From Octopus bimaculoides (lineage: Eukaryota), in NCBI RefSeq assembly GCF_001194135.2, contig NC_068983.1, positions 144,350,080 to 144,398,326 of the forward strand: a stretch of DNA of 48,247 nt, written 5' to 3'. Positions within the stretch are counted from its first letter, which is position 1. Each line of letters starts with the position of its first letter. The notes under the pieces were generated by a model. It had not been told where the DNA came from. It searched no databases and saw only the letters and a program-made list of their open reading frames with translations. This document shows positions 25,528 through 26,518 of this stretch, piece after piece. The position numbers and the translations under genes were made by a program.

Positions 25528-26518
25528 AAATTAAAATATTAGGATAAAAAATTGGATATTAATTAATATCAATATATTACCCGGAAGCAAGCACATTAAA
25601 AGAATCAGAGAGATTCAGAAAAAAATATCTGAGATCTCAAGGGATTATTGTATGTGTATATATACAGAAGACCACTAGGTGGACTGTTAATGTGCTAGAA
25701 GAAGATCACATGTAATGTGTCTACTAAGACCTAATTGTTCTCAAATGAAATTCAGCGAAATACCAAGATGTATGCGGGCAAGACAATGAAAATTACACAA
25801 ATATAAATTATCCGTGTACTATAGTTTCGAAATCAACATTCTCTTACCGAAAATATCTGTTTCTCGCCAGAATGAACTGTAAAGTAAATATAATTCTCAG
25901 AACCGTATACAAGTTGTTCCCCACTAATGGCGAACGCGCATATGTTTCTGCTAATTACACTTAATGGTAAAATTCAAAAGTCTTCGTTTTGGCGCGCTAA
26001 TTCCGGAAATATCTCTGCAGAAAATGGTTACTACATCACCTAGCACATTAACAGTCCACCTTGTCGTCTTCTTTATATATACATATACAATAATCCCTTG
26101 AGATCTCAGATGTTTTTTTTTTTCGGAATCTCTCTGATTCTTTTAATGTGCTTGCTTCCTGGTAATAAATCGATATTAATTAATATCCAATTTTTACCCT
26201 AATATTTTAATTTGATTAACCATAATCAAGTTCTCAAAGTGGGTATATGCAATGCAGTAACCATTTTCTGCAGAGATATTTCCGGAATTAGCGCGCCAAA
26301 ACGAAGACTTTTGAATTTTACTATTAAGTGTAATTAGCAGAACCATATGCGTGTTCGCCATTAGTGGGGAACAACTTGTATATGGTTCTGAGAATTATTT
26401 TTACCTTGCAGTTAGTGCTGACGAGAAACAGATATTTTCGGTAAGAGAATGTTGATTTTGAAACTATAGTACACGGATAATTTATATTTATGTAATTTTC
26501 ATTGTCTTGCCCGCATAC
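25528..26518. repeat. Interleaved inverted repeat A-B-A'-B'
   Basis: A 25528-25698 pairs with A' 26040-26213. B 25770-26036 pairs with B' 26252-26518. Confidence 0.92.

Follow-up and report, generated by a model that had tools for sequence, protein, structure and literature searches.

The double Ds of maize consists of one Ds element that sits, in the opposite orientation, inside a second Ds identical to it. Fold-back (snap-back) duplications and templated insertions in double-strand-break repair leave an inverted copy of adjacent sequence near its source. The double Ds has been mentioned in the literature as a chromosome-breaking nested Ds (PMC3260210). For replication, a four-point template switch model has been described, in which type 3-2-1-4 and its mirror 1-4-3-2 are frequent among small events and make up 31% of the high-confidence ones (Loytynoja and Goldman 2017, PMC5453318). 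Repeats reportedly make up about two thirds of octopus genomes, TIR elements and MITEs being numerous among them, and a calibration is available in which a distance of 0.09 to the consensus stands for ∼25 million years (PMC13282606).

The locus described here lies in a 48,247-bp stretch of DNA from Octopus bimaculoides, all of which was analysed (the window). It contains four repeat blocks in the order A, B, A', B', in which A' and B' are inverted copies of A and B respectively (Table 1). Most simply, these crossing repeats are a hairpin-shaped transposon plus a flipped copy of its middle i.e. ordinary repeat-element debris and not a new structure. In the simplest reading of the sequence, positions 25528-26213 (E1) would be one complete 686-bp non-coding DNA element of the foldback type (long-TIR, MITE-like) with A and A' as its termini. 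We put the probability of the whole reading, i.e. that E1 is a complete element and that B' arose from one local templated event into its flank, at roughly 0.55.

Table 1. Positions of the repeat blocks, their spacers and the related features in the window.
Feature	Positions	Strand	Description
Microsatellite (TACA)n(TA)n	25432-25527	.	Adjoins the left terminus of E1; hides any target-site duplication
A	25528-25698	+	171 bp; left terminal inverted repeat of the putative element E1; begins with the terminal motif AAATTAAAAT
s1	25699-25769	+	71 bp; subterminal family sequence of E1, not insertion filler
B	25770-26036	+	267 nt; interior (loop) segment of E1; putative source of the copy B'
s2	26037-26039	+	3 bp (CAC) separating B from A'; read directly in the sequence
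A'	26040-26213	-	174 bp; right terminal inverted repeat of the putative element E1; its outer end is the terminal motif that starts A
s3	26214-26251	.	38 bp of unrelated sequence from the end of E1 to B'; most likely original flank
B'	26252-26518	-	Bare inverted copy of the E1 interior 25770-26036; both flanks unrelated to E1 and locus 2
Locus 2	10797-11350	-	Old, diverged foldback family member; outer ∼93 bp of the left arm lost

A repeat finder was run over positions 24500-27500, and 25200-26900 was read directly. The order and the inverted orientations given in the original prediction were borne out by the repeat finder and by blastn, and its spacers of 71, 3 and 38 bp correspond to s1, s2 and s3. 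By the same two methods, B and B' are 94.8% identical (14 mismatches in 267 nt, no gaps, E = 3e-119), and their longest identical run is 66 bp. A and A' differ by 10 substitutions, a 1-bp indel and a 4-bp indel (blastn and alignment, E ∼1e-66); their identity is ∼94% when only substitutions are counted and 91% with gap columns included. The original prediction had estimated 90-95% by eye for both pairs. Substitution divergence, the comparison that had been proposed for the two pairs, does not differ between them (10/166 for A/A' versus 14/267 for B/B', Fisher p = 0.83). Blastn and a sensitive search found no further close copies of A or B within the 48-kb window.

The mismatches between B and B' are clustered. 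Seven of the 14 fall inside 23 bp (25867-25889, equivalent to 26399-26421), an arrangement reached in 36 of 20000 simulations (p ∼0.002), and the cluster coincides with the centre of symmetry of E1 near 25870. A search of the surroundings for a donor that would explain the cluster by a small template switch found none. Without it, the divergence of B/B' would be 2.9% versus 6.0% for A/A' (Fisher p = 0.13).

With B as the query, the sensitive search returned a weak match at 11128-10883 on the minus strand, which led to a distant relative of E1 in the same window (locus 2). The arms of locus 2 (10821-10932 and 11120-11231) are 92% complementary, and its right arm extends to 11350. Similarity between locus 2 and E1 was detected both by blastn (60.7% over 455 columns, E = 3e-14, covering 25528-25969) and by nhmmer (E = 7.8e-11 over 25672-26074, across both inner junctions). 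In a global alignment, the minus strand of locus 2 is colinear with A-s1-B-s2-A' (25528-26213) from terminus to terminus, with identities of 77% for A, 62% for s1, 60-72% for B and 81% for the start of A'. The 77% for A refers to the outer part of the right arm of locus 2 (minus strand of 11205-11350), the 81% applies to the inner 50 nt of A' compared with the left arm, and B is colinear over 25770-25969 with 11128-10936 (minus strand). The arms are also similarly spaced, being 341 bp apart in E1 and ∼360 bp apart in locus 2.

Homology stops exactly at the motif AAATTAAA on the outer side of A, A' and the right arm of locus 2, which is the behaviour expected of true element termini. The window holds one further copy, which is diverged and shares its right terminus with E1; a profile built from E1 and locus 2 matched nothing else there. 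The family plan, which has A-type arms at both ends, rests on this one old paralogue. A mirror parsing, in which B and B' would be the terminal repeats and A would be extra, was rejected because locus 2 has A-type sequence at its termini and B-type sequence in its centre. To the left of locus 2 lies (TA)n, to its right (CA)n(TA)n(TG)n.

The spacer s1 was examined with a shuffle test in which s1 alone was shuffled between fixed 30-nt anchors taken from the adjoining ends of A and B, and the construct was aligned separately to the two arms of locus 2. With one arm the real s1 scored better than all except 5 of 2000 shuffles, and with the other better than all except 6 of 2000 (p ∼0.003); the s1 core TGTTCTCAA..TTCAG lies at an equal offset from the end of A in E1 and in locus 2. 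Since s1 is family sequence in its canonical place, the A-s1 and s1-B junctions are ancestral family junctions and not insertion junctions. The original prediction had treated s1 as 71 bp of extra sequence, and had read the locus as a unit B+A' placed inside a split inverted copy of itself. The alignment of s1 in place to locus 2 beyond shuffles speaks against the first of these claims, and the colinearity of locus 2 over both A-s1 and s1-B against the second. As to the origin that it proposed, it was right that the blocks are transposon-derived and, in all likelihood, that an inverted templated copy was involved, but the specific parsing into such a unit is unsupported and probably wrong.

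When the same shuffle test was applied to the last 74 nt of B plus s2, the result was not significant (506/2000); by this test, the last ∼70 nt of B are not demonstrably family sequence. When reverse-complemented, s1 did not match the sequence to the right of B' (26519 onward), nor did s3 match the sequence to the left of the microsatellite. On either strand, s3 had no similarity to E1 above that of shuffles (137/200), and it had no other match in the window. The left and right flanks likewise showed no similarity to the element on either strand, and the idea that s3 and the flanks are decayed element remnants was rejected for this lack of similarity.

The longest ORF lying wholly inside E1 is 45 aa. 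Scans of E1 for tRNAs and Rfam families gave no match, returning only sub-threshold microsatellite artefacts, and nothing therefore points to a SINE or to a structured RNA. Folded alone, E1 is predicted to form 162 A:A' pairs. A 78-aa ORF in B' (26324-26560, minus strand) had no homologue in a large protein collection, none of the exact ORF products of 24026-24319 (minus), 17890-18300 (plus) and 26324-26560 (minus) was on record, and exact 22- and 24-mers from B and A had no matches in metagenome contigs. On its left side E1 adjoins the (TA)n microsatellite, and its right flank starts with GATTAACC; no target-site duplication is recognisable. Each of the three intact termini of E1 and locus 2 has the tetranucleotide TTAA within its terminal motif, and homology runs 3 bp further. 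An assignment to piggyBac on the basis of the terminal TTAA is unsupported, as homology continues past it, and an arm composed of subrepeats like that of Drosophila FB was rejected because tandem subrepeats are absent. E1 was presumably once mobile.

Microsatellites adjoin three of the four element ends examined (25432-25527, 10720-10800 and 11349-11450). Microsatellites may be seeded by the AT-rich termini; alternatively, they may be targets of the element.

If A and A' are the two terminal inverted repeats of a single element, B' is the only block for which a special event has to be invoked. B' has sharp edges and its flanks (s3 and 26519 onward) are unrelated, and a templated insertion therefore fits better than a decayed second element. 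It is the reverse complement of the contiguous upstream segment 25770-26036, which is a feature of the 3-2-1-4 order of the four-point model. We suggest that the single-stranded loop of E1 was copied, beginning beside the A:A' stem, and that this could have happened by one of two routes, i.e. a replication template switch of order 3-2-1-4 or snap-back synthesis in break repair. Synthesis would have left its template at 26251, copied from 26036 down to 25770 off the other strand and then returned, with the copy inserted in the flank 38 bp beyond the right end of E1. The interleaved order A-B-A'-B' would then be a by-product, arising where the terminal repeat pair overlaps the loop-copy pair. 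This model requires two new junctions only. At the junctions of B' there is no clear microhomology; the only candidates are a direct repeat, ATGCA/ATGCA, at 26247-26256 and a TAC at 26516-26518 that may be shared.

Several observations count against this explanation. Only 3 bp separate the end of the copied segment from the inner edge of A' (∼2% by chance for a random end point) with no compelling mechanical reason, although a possible reason is that only the loop of the A:A' hairpin would be single-stranded and therefore usable as a template. The equal divergence of A/A' and B/B' comes free with a single event and so counts against the separate copying of B'. The identity of the E1 arms drops abruptly from 94% to noise at the A-s1 junction, unlike in locus 2, where the arms continue for a further ∼90 bp. 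To these can be added that the last 74 nt of B and s2 are not demonstrably family sequence, that no target-site duplication is visible, that a single other family member was examined, and that a 267-bp copy is far longer than the documented tens of bp (PMC5453318).

Some of these difficulties disappear if the whole arrangement was produced by a single event acting on an ancestral A-GTG-B', either through inverted self-insertion of the double Ds type or through one switch-and-return error of type 3-1-4-2. In the latter version, A to B' would have been copied in reverse complement, with synthesis resuming at the start of B', so that p r' q' p' r corresponds to A B s2 A' B'. This explanation draws strength from the fact that B-s2-A' is the exact contiguous reverse complement of A and B' with 3 bp between them, and it automatically yields pairs of equal divergence, an abrupt end of A/A' identity and the abutment of B on A'. 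Type 3-1-4-2 is moreover described as making two inverted repeats, but it constitutes 1% of events and these are tens of bp long (PMC5453318). A single event also needs unexplained fillers of 71 and 38 bp (s1 and s3) at its two junctions, which is foreign sequence at the switch points of a 3-1-4-2 error, and the 71-bp filler is family sequence in canonical position and orientation over which the A-s1-B alignments are continuous. Neither the sequence to the right of B' nor that to the left of the microsatellite is a reverse complement of the corresponding filler (s1 and s3 respectively). A+B' would have to be an element that has no right terminus, and the inner copy would in turn have no left one; indeed, the inner copy (25699-26251, or 25770-26213) carries the A' terminus only. 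There is no target-site duplication around it, and no direct repeat is shared at the junctions 25698/25699, 25769/25770, 26213/26214 and 26251/26252. The outer halves were evidently not contiguous before any self-insertion, as A is followed by s1 in locus 2 too. We consider a single event of either kind unlikely, and rate a shade lower the particular proposal that the whole of A-B-A'-B' came from one 3-1-4-2 replication error on a hairpin-prone transposon, which would have produced the 171- and 267-bp repeats together. If this were true, the template switch would be ∼10 times longer than the documented ones, and long double-stranded RNA-forming loci could be built in one step in a cephalopod genome.

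Two further explanations invoke either another element or more extensive copying. B' might be the remnant of a second, independently inserted close relative of E1 in the opposite orientation, both ends of which were later deleted. Adjacent or fragmented copies are common in transposon-rich regions, the window has other transposon debris, and DNA transposons often reinsert nearby. However, this would require two deletions, one of them removing the 171-bp terminal repeat to within 3 bp; the missing parts leave no trace in s3 or in the right flank even though B' is 95% intact, and the sole other family member in the 48 kb is ∼60-77% identical and not 95%. It seems to us about as doubtful as the single replication error. 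It is still less probable that A' and B' are both new, i.e. that a right-truncated A-s1-B, once joined to 26519 onward, was broken at 26036 and repaired with an insert made up of the reverse complement of A, a 38-bp filler and the reverse complement of B. Such a repair would account for the equal divergence, the sharp inner edge of A/A', the non-family last 74 nt of B and the start of the B copy exactly at the break, and the (TA)n tract at 25432-25527 could have halted the copying of A. The price is three or four switches, and the chance regeneration of a complete-looking element, with A' in its canonical place and a spacing of 341 versus ∼360 bp. An assembly artefact, in which real blocks were threaded in the wrong order or orientation in a gap-rich short-read scaffold, is very improbable. 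The 15 N runs in the window, the 66-bp longest identical run of B/B' and the ability of inverted repeats to permit flipping of the inter-arm segment in an assembly graph speak for it. Against it, the nearest N runs to the repeat region are at 21422-21553 and 27897-28456, with no gap within 21554-27896, and the copies differ at 5-6% of sites, mostly <40 bp apart, so that reads can phase them. Every block edge coincides with an end of homology and none lies inside an identical run, and artefactual palindromes are normally 100% identical.

We modeled the folding of the locus as RNA (991 nt) with nested structures. A B:B' hairpin of 257 pairs was predicted (-509.4 kcal/mol, z = -35), as was an alternative A:A' state of 162 pairs with a summed energy of -375.6 kcal/mol. 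B:B' is the stable state in this model; A:A' is transcribed first and could therefore form transiently. According to the original prediction, two long duplexes that cross each other could form in a transcript. This holds only in part. Each of them is predicted to form, but A-form geometry, rather than computation, suggests that A:A' and B:B' cannot be complete simultaneously, as loops of 71, 3 and 38 nt would be too short for helices of 267 and 171 bp (∼750 and ∼480 Å), making the two helices alternatives. If the locus is transcribed, a duplex of 162 or 257 bp might, speculatively, be a substrate for double-stranded RNA pathways e.g. A-to-I editing or small RNAs.

The window contains other repeats. 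A near-palindrome of 172 bp at 24780-24951 has arms (24780-24859 and 24872-24951) that are 86% complementary and 12 nt apart. Its matches to miRNA models were all sub-threshold (mir-2012, 27.7 bits versus a gathering score of 90), and it is probably another hairpin-type repeat. The segments 24026-24319 (minus), 5147-5644 (minus) and 17890-18600 (plus) are likely to be transposon debris. Among their ORFs, one has a weak zf-RVT match (E = 0.0022) and another a weak HTH_32 match (E = 0.0015), both below the Pfam cut-off, and the latter looks by eye like the N-terminus of a mariner-type transposase; the ORFs at 17890-18600 had no Pfam match. A direct repeat of ∼140 bp (27235-27372 and 36060-36199, 83.6% identity) belongs to an unrelated dispersed repeat family. 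The 15 N runs range from 10 to 918 bp, total 4311 N and lie mostly beside microsatellites, a pattern that is typical of a gap-rich short-read scaffold.

If the published octopus calibration applies (PMC13282606), the 5-6% divergence of the pairs would place the event very roughly 7-9 million years ago. By itself, the locus is of little importance. It shows how repeats with a "pseudoknot" topology can be mimicked by a foldback transposon together with a single inverted copy made locally, and that one distant paralogue in the same window suffices to choose between parsings.

Among the known systems, MITE and foldback transposons share with E1 a small size (686 bp), AT-richness, the lack of coding sequence, long terminal inverted repeats (171 bp, 94%), a weakly palindromic character over the whole length, a second diverged copy in the window and intact termini that are common to the two copies; E1 departs from them in having no visible target-site duplication and in that B' lies outside the family plan. 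Its arms also lack the tandem subrepeats of Drosophila FB elements. B' resembles the product of a four-point template switch of type 3-2-1-4 in being a copy of a nearby upstream segment in reverse complement with no visible loss, and the alternative reading of the locus matches type 3-1-4-2 in its exact topology and in giving two inverted repeats at once. The published events are tens of bp long (PMC5453318), whereas the copy here would be 267 bp (441 bp on the alternative reading). The inverted self-insertion of maize double Ds yields an interleaved order, P Q' P' Q, like that of the locus. It differs in that one terminus is missing from the inner copy here, which also lacks a target-site duplication, and in that the outer halves rebuild no complete element, A-s1 being ancestral family sequence. 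Snap-back repair is unlike B' in two respects, as the junctions have no clear microhomology and a gap of 215 bp between source and copy takes the place of a tight palindrome; it is like B' in leaving an inverted copy close to its source, here beside a hairpin-prone element.
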